Origin: Octopus bimaculoides
Taxonomy: Eukaryota
DNA: 64,000 bases
Assembly (NCBI RefSeq): GCF_001194135.2
Contig: NC_068987.1
Location: forward strand, 47,364,802-47,428,801
Direction of reading: 5' to 3'
The notes beneath the pieces were generated by a model, which was not told the DNA's origin, did not search any database, and saw only the letters and a list, made by a program, of their open reading frames with translations. Every line of letters begins with the position of its first letter. Within the stretch, counting starts at the first letter, position 1. Of the stretch, positions 28,711 to 59,649 are shown one piece after another. Made by a program: the position numbers and the translations under genes.

Positions 28711-28961
28711 TCATTTTACTGACATTTGAAGTTCTTTGCCATTTGTCATGGCATTCAAAGCAGAATCACAAAGTGAGACTTTTTTGCTGTACTGTTTTAG
28801 CTTATCCTGAAGCTGTGTCTCCTGTTGCGTTAGTTCCGTGTTCTGTAGTTCTAGGAGAGTATAGTCTGCTCGTACCTGATTGACTTCGGAGAGTAACTCT
28901 TCTAGTCGGTCTTTTTTCCTCTGTTGCTTCTCTCGCACTTCTTGCAATAAACTAGACACAG
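28711..28961 (-). CDS. Gene B coding exon 8 (terminal, 251 nt), coiled coil: VSSLLQEVREKQQRKKDRLEELL...KVSLCDSALNAMTNGKELQMSVK*
   Basis: Acceptor atttgtcttacttttttag, phase 1, heptad pattern, TGA at 28713-28711. Confidence 0.85.
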
Positions 28962-28999
28962 CTAAAAAAGTAAGACAAATATTACATTAATGATAATAA

Positions 29000-29970
29000 T
29001 AATAATAATAATAATAATAATGATAATAATTTTATATTTTGGCACAAGGCTAGCAATTTCAGGGGAAGGGATAAGTTGATTGCATTGACCCCAGTGTTCA
29101 ACCAGTACTTATTTTACCAACCCCAAAAGGATGAAAGACAAAGTCGACCCTGGTGGCATTTGAACTCAGAACATAAAGACAGATGAAATGTTGCTGAGCA
29201 TTTGGCCCAGCATGCTAATGATCCTGCTGCCTTAAGAACAACACAAGAGCAGCAGGAGCAACAACAACAGCAGCATCAATGACAACAGGTGTTTTTAATT
29301 TGAAGCAAAGTCAGTAATTTTGGGTGGGGAGAGGGCAGGTCAATACCACTGACTTCAGAACATGATTGGAATCATCAAGCCTGTAGGTATAAAAAGCAAA
29401 GTTGACCCCAGCATAATTTGAACACAGAATATGGGATAACTGGAAGATATACTGCAAGGCATTCTCTCTGAAGCTTCTGATGAATCTGCCAGCTTGCTGC
29501 CTTATTAATAATAATGATTTCAAATTTTGGCACAAAGCCAGAACTTTTAGGGGAGGGAGTAAGTTTATTACATTGACCCTAGTATTGAACTGGTACTTAT
29601 TTTATTGAACCTGAAAGGATGAAAAGCAAAGTCAACCCTGGCAGAATTTGAACTCAGAACATGAAGATGGATGAAATGCTGCTAAGCCTTCTGTTCAGCA
29701 TGCTAAAGATTCTGACAGCTTGCTACCTCAGTTGTAGTAATAATAATGATATTGATTTCAAATTTTGGCAAAAGCCAGCAACCTCAGGGAGGGGGTGAGT
29801 CAATTACATTGACCCTAGAGCTCAACTGGTACTTATTTTATCAACCCTGAAAGAATGAAAGGCAAAGGTGACTTCAGTGGAATTTGAACTCAAAATGTAA
29901 AGATGGAAGAAATGCTGTTAAGCATTTTGTTCAGCATGCTAACAATTCTGCCAGCTAGCTGCCTTAGTAG
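29000..29970 (-). mobile_element. Four head-to-tail Nin-domain SINEs next to the last acceptor of gene B
   Basis: Four gatgaaaggcaaagtc-type cores (about 29130, 29395, 29615, 29855) separated by (AAT)n/(AGT)n tracts. Confidence 0.8.
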
Positions 29971-31907
29971 TAGTAGTAATAATTTCTTTGTTGACCACAA
30001 AGGATTTACATTTTGGAAAATGTTATAGATAGTATAGGACAAAACAAAGAATGTGTGTATGTGTGTGAGCGTGTATATGTGTATGTTGTGAGGGTTTTGT
30101 GTGTAAACAGGTTTAATGTAATAAAAAAAAAAACCCTGTCAGACTTTGCAAAGAACAATTCATCTTTTCTTTTCAAACTCATATGCTGTTCAGTCTCAAC
30201 CACCCACTTTCCTGTAACTGCTCACCCACACATGTCTCCCTCACACACGTACACATTCACATACATGTGCACATGCACACACAACATCCAATATATGCCA
30301 TACACTCAGTTACACACATCTATGTACACACACACACAGAGCCAATCTCAACTCACAAAACACCTCACACATGTGCATGCATACATGCACTACTTGTATC
30401 TATCTGACACAAACATATATACATGTATGCACAACACACACACTAATCAACTACCAGGATCTTGCACAACTATTTCCTTCTCTGCCTCATTCCAGCTCTC
30501 TTTATTTGTCTGATTCTCTTTCTCTCTTGTTCTCTCTACTTCTACATGCATACATACACACTTACATCACCATCATTTAGCGTCTGCCTTCCATGCTGGC
30601 ATGGGTTAGATGGCTTTACTGAAACTGGTAAGCCGAAGAGCTGCACCAAGTTCCATTCTGATTTGGCATGGTTTCTACAGCTGGATGCCTTTCCTAACAC
30701 CATCCAATCTATGCTTTTTACATGCCACCAGCACAGGTGCCAGTTAGGTGACACTAACATCTGCCATGACTATGATTTCACTTGGCTTGATGAGTCTTCT
30801 CAAGCACAGCATATTGTCAAAGGTCTCAGTCACTATCATCACCTCCGTGAGGCCCAACGTTTCAGATCATGCTTTACCACTTTGTCCCATATCTTCCTGG
30901 GCTTACCTCCTTCATAGGTTCCCTGCACAGTTAGAGACCAGCACTTCTTCACACAGCTGTCCTCGTCCATATGCATCACATGACCATACCAGCACACTAC
31001 ACCTGACGCCTCTTATGCTCAACTTTTTTCTCAAGACGTTTACACTCTGTTGCACATGTACACTGACACTGCACATCCAGCAAAGCCAGGTGTATATCCT
31101 CTCATATGTACAAAAACACAGACTGATGATGACACACACACACGTACTTTTATATAAGGACTTATATGCATCTTTTAAATATATTTTCACATAGGTAAAA
31201 TCATGTAGCTGACTTCTACATTGGTTAATTCCATAATTGTCACTCTGTGAAGTTACCTCAGTCGAGACAGCATTTCACTTGAGCCGGACAGCTGCCTCTC
31301 TGTCAGTCACTCTCACTAACTGACTTTAGCTTACAGACTTCTTGTTTTTATAACTATCCAAAACCAGCCAGAATTATAGATATTGTTAAGAAGAATAGAT
31401 TTCATTGGTGGTCTGTTATCTCTATTCTAGTTTTTGGTGGCCTAGAAGAGGTTAGAAGGGTCAAGTGGCAAAGACATTATTCTGCTTAGCAAAGGCATCT
31501 GGCAAATGTAACTGCTGTCACTCACAGAAAAACTATAGTTTTAACGTGAGAAAAGTGCTGTTGAACTGTTAAGTGAAATTTGAGTATCAAGGATCGAATC
31601 CATGCTATGCTTGCATGAAACCACTACATATATATAGATGTATAGCATACATGAATATATACAGATATATATGTATATATATATACATGTATGTATAGAT
31701 TTGTTTATGTATGTATATGTATATATGTGTATATACATATATATGTGTGTATATATATATATATATATATATATATATGTATATATATATAGATGTATAT
31801 GTAATATGTACACAAATATTTATACTCATATATACATGCATACATATATTTATACATATATATATACATACATATATACATATACATACATATAAGTGTG
31901 TATATAG

Positions 31908-57627: not shown

Positions 57628-57899
57628 TATATTATCTTTTGTCAAAAGAGAGAAGGCAGTGCCCATGACCTGTTACAAGACCTCCGAGACCGGTGGGAAT
57701 GAGGAAGGTATCCTCAAACCGGTATGTTACAGCAAGATAGATTTTGCTAAAAACATCCAAGGTGTTAGATGGTGGTGTTAAGTCGGGCGACGCAGTATGT
57801 CTACTACCTTTGTAGACTATGATGCAGTTTGAATTCAGAACGCAAAGAACAAGAACAATTATCAGTCTGATGTACTTCAGTTCCACCAATCCATTGCCC

Positions 57900-59095
57900 T
57901 AGATAGACAGCCTATTTTTTGGTCGACCCCGAAAGGATGAAAGGCAAAACTGACCTAATAGACATAAGACCATAAATTTAAAAGAAGAAAAGCGATTATC
58001 CTTCCCCCTACACACACATACATACCCAGTATTTGACTGGTATCTGGAAGGATGAAAGGTGAAGTCCATCATGGCGAAATTCGAATTAAAAACGTAAGGA
58101 CCAGCAAGTGAATTCCGCTCCAAACATTTTGCAGTGCCCTGCTCCAATTTTTATGGATAAACGTTAGTAATGTTTCTGTGTATGAGTATGCGCAAGGCGA
58201 ACGGGAAGCTATCTGGTTGAAAAGTGAAAACTTTACAAGGGAAGCATGAAGAAGAAATGTCTTTCGAACATACGGGGAGAGGGCATTATTTGATATCCTC
58301 AGTCCCAGTATTTGACCCCGAAAGGATAATAGGTAAAGTTGACCTCGGCGGAATTTGAACTCAGCACGTAGAGCCGGAAGAAGTGCTGTTAAGCATTTTG
58401 TATGATACACCAACGATTCTGCCTTTTACTTTCCATTATAGGCTCAAGGCCTGAAATTCTGGGGGAAGGAATTAGTTGATTACATTGATCCGACCGCGAA
58501 AGCCTTTAATAATAATAATTCTTTCGAATCTGGCATAAGGCCAGCAATTTTAAGGAAAGTAGATTAATCAATTACATCGAGTCCAATGCTTGACTGATAC
58601 TTTATTTCCTCGATTCCGGAGAGATGAATGGTAACAACAGCAGGGTTTGCACTCAGAAGATAAGAGCCGGCAGAAACACCGCAAAGTATTCTCTGATTTT
58701 TGCCAATGTATTGCTATTTCTTCTGACTCTTTACGTTCTGAGTTCAACTTTGCCTTTCATCCTTCGGGATCGATAAGATAAGTTCCAGTTGAGCTCCGGG
58801 GTCGACGTAATTGACTAGCCCACCACCACCAAATTTCAGGCCCTGTATCTATACTAGAAAAGATTATTATTATTATGACAGACCGAGTAAAAGCACAGCA
58901 CGCTGGATGAAATGCTTAGCGGTATTTCACCCGTTGCTACGTTCTTAGTTTAAATTCCGCCGAGGTCGATTTTGCTTTCCATCCTCTCGGGGTCAATAAA
59001 TTAGGTACCAGAGAAACATTGGTGTCGATGTAATCGACTAGCCTCTTCCCCCAAAATTTCAGGCCTTGTGTTTATAGTAGAAAAGATTATGAGAG
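57900..59095. mobile_element. Nin-SINE cluster with an orientation switch (- strand copies 57900-58700, + strand copies 58725-59095)
   Basis: gaaaggatgaaaggc-type cores on the left, complementary ttgcctttcatcc cores with (ATT)n tails on the right. Confidence 0.8.
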
Positions 59096-59492
59096 AACGA
59101 GTAACAATTAGGCATTTTAAATGTGGTAGTATAAGGTTGAAGGCATAATCCCAATTTTGGTATTGCTAGATCTTTCACACTAAATTGAAGGGGGTTAGGA
59201 CGATCTTTATAGGAAGTTTCCTTGACGAAGACACATCTCAATGACTAGTTTGGTTAAGATGATCAGCAGTAGAATTGTTGAGGTTGCTGGTGATAATGAT
59301 ACCGACGCTGAATTGTTAATTAAAACAGAAATAAGACAGGATCACCTTCGTCGGTAGTGTTGCATAAATTCACAGACAAAACTATCAATGTAAAGTAATA
59401 TTGCATGAATGGAGGGGAAGAAAATTATTATCAGTCCAGGGAAGTGAGGAAAGACCTATTTTCAAGTAGTAATAGAGAGAAGGAAAACTTAC

Positions 59493-59649
59493 TTTCACAC
59501 CAAATCTTACGATGCCATACTCTTAGGTGACTCCTGAGGTTCGTGTTAGAGCGGTGGTATCGAACATTCCTGCCACATATTTTACAAAAGGCATCCTGAG
59601 CACTTACAGCCGTGAAATAATTCCAAACTATGCATGTTTTCCGTCGCAT
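59493..59649 (-). CDS. Gene B coding exon 1 (157 nt, phase 1): BED zinc finger MRRKTCIVWNYFTAVSAQDAFCKICGRNVRYHRSNTNLRSHLRVWHRKIWCE
   Basis: BED signature W-x2-F, C-x2-C, S(N)TxNL, H-L-x3-H. In-frame TGA two codons upstream of the ATG. Donor GAAA|gtaagt. Upstream acceptor tttcag at 59696. Confidence 0.85.

Follow-up and report, generated by a model that had tools for sequence, protein, structure and literature searches.

hAT transposases bind DNA through their BED fingers, domains that have undergone repeated domestication (PMC10027918; bioRxiv 10.1101/2020.05.07.082677), and cases in which splicing has fused domains of this type to host exons are documented in tetrapods (bioRxiv 10.1101/2020.05.07.082677). 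In host-transposase fusions such as KRABINER (bioRxiv 10.1101/2020.05.07.082677), a single exon with a transposase-type DNA-binding domain is spliced to host exons that give an effector or interaction domain, the product is under purifying selection, and no catalytic transposase domain is present. Drosophila BEAF-32 has an N-terminal BED finger, a middle part of unknown structure, and, at its C-terminus, a self-association region that includes a putative leucine zipper (PMC5021357), and the vertebrate ZBED2 and ZBED3, which have no hATC domain, are host genes in which nothing but the BED finger of a presumed hAT ancestor is retained. Here we describe a gene of Octopus bimaculoides with resemblances to each of these, located on the minus strand (59649-28711) of a 64,000-nucleotide stretch of contig NC_068987.1 (RefSeq assembly GCF_001194135.2, positions 47,364,802 to 47,428,801), the whole of which we refer to as the window. 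We refer to this gene as the BED gene, and to the gene whose last two exons lie convergent to it within the window as gene A.

The BED gene resembles the host-transposase fusions in each of the respects listed above. These fusions are known from tetrapods and mostly have a KRAB partner, whereas the BED gene belongs to coleoid cephalopods, its partner is a coiled-coil tail apparently copied from an adjoining ankyrin-repeat (ANK) gene, and no donor transposon was found for it. The likeness to BEAF-32 is one of layout only, with a single N-terminal BED finger, an unstructured middle, and a C-terminal region of putative self-association; there is no detected homology beyond the BED finger, and the BED gene lacks a BESS domain (no Pfam match at E<=1) and has a tail of about 110 residues that is ANK-family-derived. 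ZBED2 and ZBED3 are without a coiled-coil tail and have no orthology to the BED gene. A fourth comparison is with lophotrochozoan proteins that combine ANK repeats with a coiled coil (Mizuhopecten XP_021360894, Lingula XP_013412072, Potamilus KAK3593909), which have a homologous C-terminal module encoded with the same last-exon phases, and whose cephalopod counterparts adjoin the BED gene. They differ in having ANK repeats and an N-terminal Cys/His-rich HHPLL segment where the BED gene has its BED finger. This ANK and coiled-coil family (scallop 'SWI4-like', Lingula LOC106174876) is uncharacterised.

Our preferred reading, to which we assign a probability of about 0.72, is that the locus is an annotated seven-exon gene encoding a BED finger, a linker, and a gene A-derived tail, with the origin and function proposed below. 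The seven coding exons total 1233 nt and encode 410 aa, with intron phases 1, 0, 2, 2, 1 and 1. The initial annotation, made from the sequence, had presented the gene as one hidden from the open reading frame (ORF) track; a prokaryote-style track did miss it, because its exons of 53-413 nt are split by introns of 1.8-10.5 kb. It was not otherwise hidden, as the corrected model yields a protein with 100% identity to XP_014788653.1 of O. bimaculoides (UniProt A0A0L8FM32, "BED-type domain-containing protein"), and the gene is thus already annotated, with entries in RefSeq and UniProt for several species. We found no paper in the literature that cites any of its accessions.

Coding exon 1 (59649-59493, 157 nt; this and all other BED-gene exons are on the minus strand) begins with the ATG, ends in phase 1, and carries the whole BED zinc finger. 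Exon 2 (48983-48571, 413 nt, phase 1 to 0) specifies a disordered linker in which Ser, Asn, Asp and Gln abound, and exon 3 (45298-45246, 53 nt, phase 0 to 2) encodes PGEDLGETDRTQDSGVI[S], which includes an invariant DSG(V/I)IS. Exon 4 (39780-39676, 105 nt, phase 2 to 2) contains a conserved CD..ESK..IAAQIE motif and a short predicted helix. Exon 5 (37828-37716, 113 nt, phase 2 to 1) is a corrected form of the sixth exon in the initial annotation, exon 6 (35814-35674, 141 nt, phase 1 to 1) opens the conserved C-terminal module with DSIAEYFKICDNSTRQTFLDVMRNDR..., and exon 7 (28961-28711, 251 nt with the TGA counted) codes for the coiled coil and for a terminal KKVSLCDSALNAM motif. The exon 5 acceptor, located by tblastn and by direct reading, is ...TTCCAG/GAATGG (...TTGACATTCCAG/GAATGG), 75 nt upstream of an internal in-frame AG at 37753, and its use adds RNGDNDKNIHANFLPDLEISNTISH, in agreement with both O. 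sinensis and XP_014788653.1.

An assembly gap (36387-36858) lies inside intron 5 (37716 to 35814), between the sixth and seventh exons of the initial annotation. Its flanks are colinear with the O. sinensis locus (L001), 37487-37109 corresponding to L001 35504-35865 and 36382-33526 to L001 37473-40379. The L001 interval that matches the gap is bounded by exons at 34727-34839 and 38078-38218, with none between, and the exon 5/6 junction (...ITK/STDGE...) is contiguous without insertion in the protein of every orthologue. The gap is therefore intronic, with no effect on the coding sequence or its frame, although its real length is probably about 0.9 kb greater than that written.

The initial annotation proposed that a lone BED exon is joined to a non-transposase coiled-coil module without DDE or hATC domains, and the protein bears out this description. 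A complete finger stands alone in exon 1, with the Pfam zf-BED domain (PF02892) matched at residues 8-46 (33.4 bits against a cut-off of 20.6, E 4.5e-8). The BED signature is VWNYF, and W9, Y11 and F12, together with C22-x2-C25-x15-H41-x4-H46, are invariant in five cephalopod sequences. No second Pfam domain is matched above threshold, and neither DDE nor hATC was detected; Pfam matches to CENP-H (17.9 bits against a cut-off of 29.9) and Nup54 were dismissed as generic coiled coil. Disorder is predicted for residues 53-280, a stretch with abundant Ser, Asn, Asp and Gln, the exon 2 linker having a predicted local distance difference test score (pLDDT) below 50 in an AlphaFold2 (AF2) model, and for this linker no homology was found outside cephalopods. 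Within the linker region there is an invariant block, ETDRT(Q/R)DSG(V/I)IS..CD..ESK..IAAQIE. Residues 288-407 are modelled as a short helix followed by a single helix of about 110 residues (298-407, pLDDT about 98), in which heptad a and d positions are 69% hydrophobic in one register as against 34% overall, and this C-terminus is the coiled-coil module of the initial annotation. The AF2 model, built with a five-sequence alignment, left the BED finger unfolded (pLDDT<50). A Foldseek search of the PDB with this model returned no match at E<=0.001, the expected outcome for a model that is one helix and otherwise disordered, and a PDB sequence search with the C-terminal profile gave insignificant hits only.

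The product is a chimera of three parts. The first is the N-terminal BED zinc finger, derived entirely from exon 1, and the second a disordered, acidic, Ser/Asn-rich linker of about 230 residues with the invariant DSG(V/I)IS and a short helix. The third is a C-terminal module of about 120 residues, comprising a cap (EYFKIC..R..FLDVMRNDR), the heptad coiled coil of about 110 residues, and a terminal KKVxLCDSALNA.

A protein search with the 412-aa product assembled in the initial annotation, one of the checks proposed there, retrieved full-length relatives from cephalopods, namely O. sinensis LOC115214149 (410 aa), Argonauta hians (395 aa) and the 396-aa product of a read-assembled contig, as well as a partial related protein of Acanthosepion pharaonis. 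The O. sinensis locus has the same seven exons, all bounded by AG and GT, and the Argonauta hians exons, of 157, 368, 53, 108, 110, 141 and 251 nt, have phases identical to those of the O. bimaculoides gene. For decapods, a 1240-nt intron-free contig from run SRR27666080 contains a single 396-aa ORF that spans the BED finger as well as the coiled coil, and both are also present in a Sepia-like 410-aa product assembled from reads (Logan). As these read-derived contigs hold the two parts in one ORF, the BED exon is spliced to the tail in decapods. The fusion is found in octopods and decapods alike and is thus older than their split, more than about 250 million years (My) ago, so that the gene is not the new one that had been suggested.

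Over the whole BED gene, comparison with O. sinensis gives a synonymous divergence (dS) of 0.138, a nonsynonymous divergence (dN) of 0.028 and a ratio of 0.205, with a dN/dS of 0.12 for the C-terminal module and 0.30 for the exon 2 linker. The BED exon, for which a dN/dS comparison between Octopus species had also been proposed, has 100% amino acid identity between the two, with five synonymous and no nonsynonymous differences. Colinear intron DNA is mostly 85-93% identical. The BED gene is thus shown to be conserved in octopods and decapods and to be under purifying selection.

A hAT origin of the BED exon is plausible. The exon is no recent insertion, since it is conserved at the syntenic position in both O. 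sinensis and Argonauta. When used alone as a protein query, the 53-aa BED exon returned no candidates even though identical orthologues exist, short queries being missed by the word index. Two O. bimaculoides ZBED proteins listed in a catalogue of metazoan transposon-derived transcription factors (PMC10027918; XP_014767987 and XP_014780158) are encoded at other loci. In the scanned window ORFs of at least 90 aa no hAT domains were found, and the transposon proteins among them are limited to Helitron and Pif1 fragments and a PHD-like ORF.

The alternative that survives best is that the BED exon was shuffled from some other cellular BED gene, or is an ancient host finger, with no capture from a hAT element. 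No transposase, hATC or hAT remnant was seen at the locus in the ORFs scanned (terminal inverted repeats were not searched for), and the nearest solved relative of the finger is the host protein ZBED1, both of which fit this alternative. After more than 250 My, however, counting from the octopod-decapod split, a flanking transposon signal is unexpected under either explanation. The repeated domestication of hAT BED fingers (PMC10027918; bioRxiv 10.1101/2020.05.07.082677) argues for capture, and we regard derivation from a cellular gene as possible, if the less likely of the two routes.

Regarding the tail, the initial annotation proposed descent from a gene A-like ancestor, and this is supported by homology to the C-termini of ANK proteins, by common intron positions and phases, and by the adjoining position of an ANK gene. 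Gene A is convergent to the BED gene and lies 23 kb from its stop codon. Its penultimate exon (3773-3916, plus strand, 144 nt, phase 1 to 1) encodes SNNTSDGILKQYFHICNDSARENLIASINMDKNE... and ...SDGILKQYFHICNDSARENLIASINMDKNE... and is a paralogue of BED-gene exon 6; its last exon (5245-5456, plus strand, 212 nt including the stop) encodes a coiled coil that ends with ...KISLCVSVLKMVLNKNT and is a paralogue of BED-gene exon 7. The intron between them (3916/5245) coincides with BED-gene intron 6/7 in both alignment position and phase (1), and the intron preceding the penultimate exon is likewise in phase 1, cephalopod gene A having been checked for its last two exons only. Aligned with hhalign, the BED family and the tail of gene A in the window match with a probability of 95.7% (E 9e-9).

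A profile of the C-terminal half of the BED protein, compared with 1.84 billion representative proteins, matched only cephalopod orthologues and five proteins of the ANK family, in each case at the extreme C-terminus (hmmsearch E 1e-10 to 7e-4). The five are from the scallops Ylistrum, Argopecten and Mizuhopecten (named "SWI4-like" or "ANKRD6"), the brachiopod Lingula and the mussel Potamilus; four of them have N-terminal ankyrin repeats, and the remaining one is a 139-aa tail-only scallop protein. With hhalign the BED tail and the ANK-family tails match at 98.2% (E 2.9e-14) over 119 columns, in the tail only, and the BED protein itself has no Ank domain match in Pfam. Motifs outside the heptad pattern, Y[FL]x[IVM]C..R..[IF]L..DR and K[VIL]xxC[DE]xA[LI], are common to the two modules at both ends. 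A PDB search with the ANK-family profile found generic ankyrin repeats only.

Argonauta has a gene for a 735-aa ANK-repeat protein that is convergent to the BED gene and 6.8 kb downstream of it, the last two exons of which have 81% and 77% protein identity to the gene A exons of the window. Judged by these matches, gene A is the cephalopod member of the lophotrochozoan ANK and coiled-coil family. The gene order in Argonauta is LIN7-like gene, BED gene, ANK gene; O. sinensis also has the LIN7-like gene upstream, and the window has the last two exons of the ANK gene downstream of the BED gene. No ANK exons were found in the window by tblastn with the bivalve and brachiopod ANK proteins, and the 5' part of gene A must therefore lie past the left end of the window. 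The 117-aa tail of gene A, used as a protein query, retrieved no match, a result that is uninformative as to whether gene A is annotated.

The exon structures agree over a longer stretch than the proteins. With exon sizes in nucleotides and intron phases in parentheses, the 3' exons are ..(0)137(2)111(2)98(1)132(1)227 in Lingula, ..(0)47(2)84(2)132(2)35(1)132(1)227 in Potamilus, which has one extra intron, and (0)53(2)105(2)113(1)141(1)251 in the Octopus BED gene, with unchanged phases in Argonauta. BED-gene exons 3-7 and the ANK genes thus have five consecutive intron phases (0, 2, 2, 1, 1) in common, and the exon sizes are similar; from the usual phase frequencies we estimate that such a match would arise by chance in about 0.2-0.5% of cases. 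The residues directly ahead of the phase-2 intron are AETDVGSSIK[C] in Lingula and GETDRTQDSGVI[S] in the BED gene, an ETD.. motif being present in both. We conclude from these comparisons that BED-gene exons 3-7 were in all likelihood copied, as DNA, from the last five exons of a gene of the ANK family, the common phases pointing to duplication of DNA. The direction is from the ANK gene to the BED gene, as ANK repeats with this tail occur in brachiopods and bivalves and a BED finger with this tail only in cephalopods.

It could be argued that the likeness of the two tails is generic coiled-coil similarity or convergence, and that the BED gene is no partial duplicate of gene A. Pairwise identity of the tails is only 21-26%, and coiled coils do give spurious profile matches, such as the sub-threshold ones to CENP-H, ATG16 and HAUS. 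Nevertheless, the profile picked out no generic coiled-coil protein from among the 1.84 billion, only the tails of a single family; the module is always at the extreme C-terminus, with non-heptad motifs in common at both of its ends; and the agreement in five phases and the adjacency to gene A, kept in the window and in Argonauta, would have to be coincidental. We consider this explanation very improbable.

An only marginally weaker alternative is that the Octopus BED exon stands outside the working gene, as a relic or part of a separate transcript, and that the product is a BED-less protein of 399 aa that starts at 57197. The newest O. bimaculoides RefSeq model (XP_052825556.1, 399 aa) does swap the BED exon for an alternative first exon without a BED finger (57197-57075, minus strand), of which the ATG and GT donor are retained in O. 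sinensis, and in the O. vulgaris annotation the locus is divided into proteins of 208 aa and 197 aa. However, the alternative exon lies within a transposon helix-turn-helix-like (HTH-like) ORF (57374-57069; VQCILWLAKFES...PP..SI..WNRQFKETxS) and has seven nonsynonymous and no synonymous differences from O. sinensis, whereas the BED exon has the reverse pattern and is near-invariant across coleoids. Moreover, the decapod mRNA contig joins the BED finger to the tail, and the annotations of O. sinensis, Argonauta, O. vulgaris and the first of O. bimaculoides all join the BED exon to exon 2. Probably the alternative exon is either a piece of transposon that was exonised or an artefact of annotation, with no conserved coding sequence, and we think it very unlikely that it replaces the BED exon in the working gene.

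The eight-exon, 412-aa model of the initial annotation differs from the seven-exon gene by two errors. Its eight segments chain as described, from an ATG to a TGA, into 1239 nt encoding 412 aa without a stop, and all eight are preceded by AG and followed by GT, but only six are correct exons, those at 59649-59493, 48983-48571, 45298-45246, 39780-39676, 35814-35674 and 28961-28711 matching exons of the conserved gene exactly. The second segment (53969-53889, minus strand, 27 aa) is a pseudo-exon within intron 1 and outside the conserved gene, absent from every full-length orthologue; the O. sinensis stretch that aligns to it has indels of +7, +2 and -1 and an in-frame TGA after eight codons. 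In intron 1 alone, 256 AG..GT cassettes of 45-201 nt are in frame and free of stops, so that the frame compatibility of this segment is no better than chance, although its splice sites are among the two best of these cassettes (the only two that are strong). It may conceivably be used as a minor, species-specific cassette exon. In the sixth segment (37753-37716) an internal AG was taken as the acceptor, and about 25 residues present in all orthologues were dropped. That the eight-exon model is correct as it stands, with its 81-nt exon and its 38-nt exon 6, is the least probable of the explanations, in that its open chain, AG and GT at every site, and one of only two strict candidates in intron 1 are outweighed by 27 residues found in no orthologue, 25 omitted from what all of them have, the frameshifts and stop in O. 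sinensis, and the identity of the corrected model to the RefSeq protein. GT-AG sites and frame compatibility alone thus let through one false exon and one wrong acceptor. Overall, the observation behind the initial annotation is partly confirmed and its interpretation partly supported.

Returning to the seven-exon gene with its BED finger and gene A-derived tail, we propose that a local, inverted duplication of the 3' part of gene A took place before the coleoid radiation, with a BED-finger exon and a long linker exon taking the place of the ANK-repeat 5' part. If the BED exon is hAT-derived, the route would have been 'transposase capture' or exon shuffling. The BED finger is predicted to bind DNA, and the coiled coil would form a homo-oligomer and possibly, having been inherited from gene A, a hetero-oligomer with the ANK paralogue. 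The product would then be a multivalent DNA-binding regulator or architectural factor, by analogy with the layout of BEAF-32; a transcription-factor function is what we infer for it. DSGxxS is the canonical beta-TrCP degron pattern, and the invariant copy in exon 3 may be a beta-TrCP-type phosphodegron that confers regulated turnover.

Several points weigh against this reading. No donor hAT element or other BED relative was found, and the nearest solved finger, that of ZBED1, is matched only at E 0.015; the transposon origin of exon 1 therefore draws on general knowledge of BED fingers. Significant similarity to the ANK family extends only over exons 6-7, the homology of exons 3-5 depending on phases, exon sizes and one short motif. 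The tail identities of 21-26% apply to the BED tail against any ANK-family tail, cephalopod gene A being no closer than scallop, and the date and local nature of the duplication are accordingly taken from synteny, without a tree. DNA binding, oligomerisation and degron function are predictions from the sequence or the model. Lastly, there is the newest RefSeq model of the species, with its different first exon.

A further extension of the proposal, which we regard as speculative and on balance unlikely, is that the BED protein pairs, by way of its inherited coiled coil, with the adjoining ANK paralogue and would tether or titrate this ANK scaffold, which does not otherwise bind DNA, at specific DNA sites, the two forming a coleoid-specific two-gene regulatory module subject to turnover through the invariant DSGxxS.

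The gene A part of the window and its Argonauta counterpart contain other features. In Argonauta (locus L002) an inverted partial copy of the gene A last exon (32568-32711, plus strand; 48 aa, 71% identity) is located about 2.6 kb from the real last exon (29924-29712, minus strand), a second local inverted duplication of the tail. An 89-nt block in the window (1845-1933) is 81% identical between O. bimaculoides and Argonauta within an otherwise unalignable gene A intron, and is a candidate small exon or conserved non-coding element. In the ORF at 1206-1706 (plus strand) a PHD/C1-like Cys-rich motif precedes sequence resembling the end of a retroelement ORF, and the whole probably represents a piece of transposon within a gene A intron.

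Repeats are also present in the introns of the BED gene. Helitron fragments are found at 33520-32264 (minus strand; Helitron_like_N, E 9e-52) and 43023-43577 (plus strand; a Pif1 2B/helicase C-terminal piece), and the block of about 33526-29266, which holds the Helitron_like_N match, has no counterpart in O. sinensis and was therefore inserted or deleted in one lineage only, within the last intron. Short interspersed element-like (SINE-like) arrays with a unit of about 230 bp are located at about 48564-45313, 29983-29506, and about 4975-4516. The unit has a poly-TAA head and contains ...GGCACAAGGCC...GATTACATCGACCC...ACTGGTACTTA...; one array begins directly after the exon 2 donor, and many copies are also present at the O. 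sinensis locus.

Upstream of the BED gene, a 2.2-kb block (61590-63795) is 92% identical to O. sinensis, and in O. sinensis and Argonauta a LIN7-like (L27 and PDZ) gene is called here in head-to-head orientation, which suggests that the block may be a shared bidirectional promoter region. No LIN7 exon was found by tblastn in the window or in the flanks of the O. sinensis and Argonauta loci, the query being human LIN7C. The window has six gaps of N in total, the others being at 9261-9685, 16696-17215, 19933-20549, 59824-60396 and 61169-61577. As the gap at 59824-60396 is only 175 nt upstream of the BED-gene ATG, the promoter and 5' untranslated region are incomplete in the assembly.

The BED gene is a clear invertebrate case of a class documented mostly in vertebrates, in which a transposase-type finger is spliced onto host exons, and is distinguished by the fact that the parent of its host part can be identified and still adjoins it. 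Were the unlikely pairing of the two products to hold, the locus would be a two-gene module born of an inverted partial duplication and BED capture. The fusion is limited to coleoids, a clade with lineage-specific expansions of regulatory genes, and its product is thus a candidate clade-specific chromatin or transcription factor.

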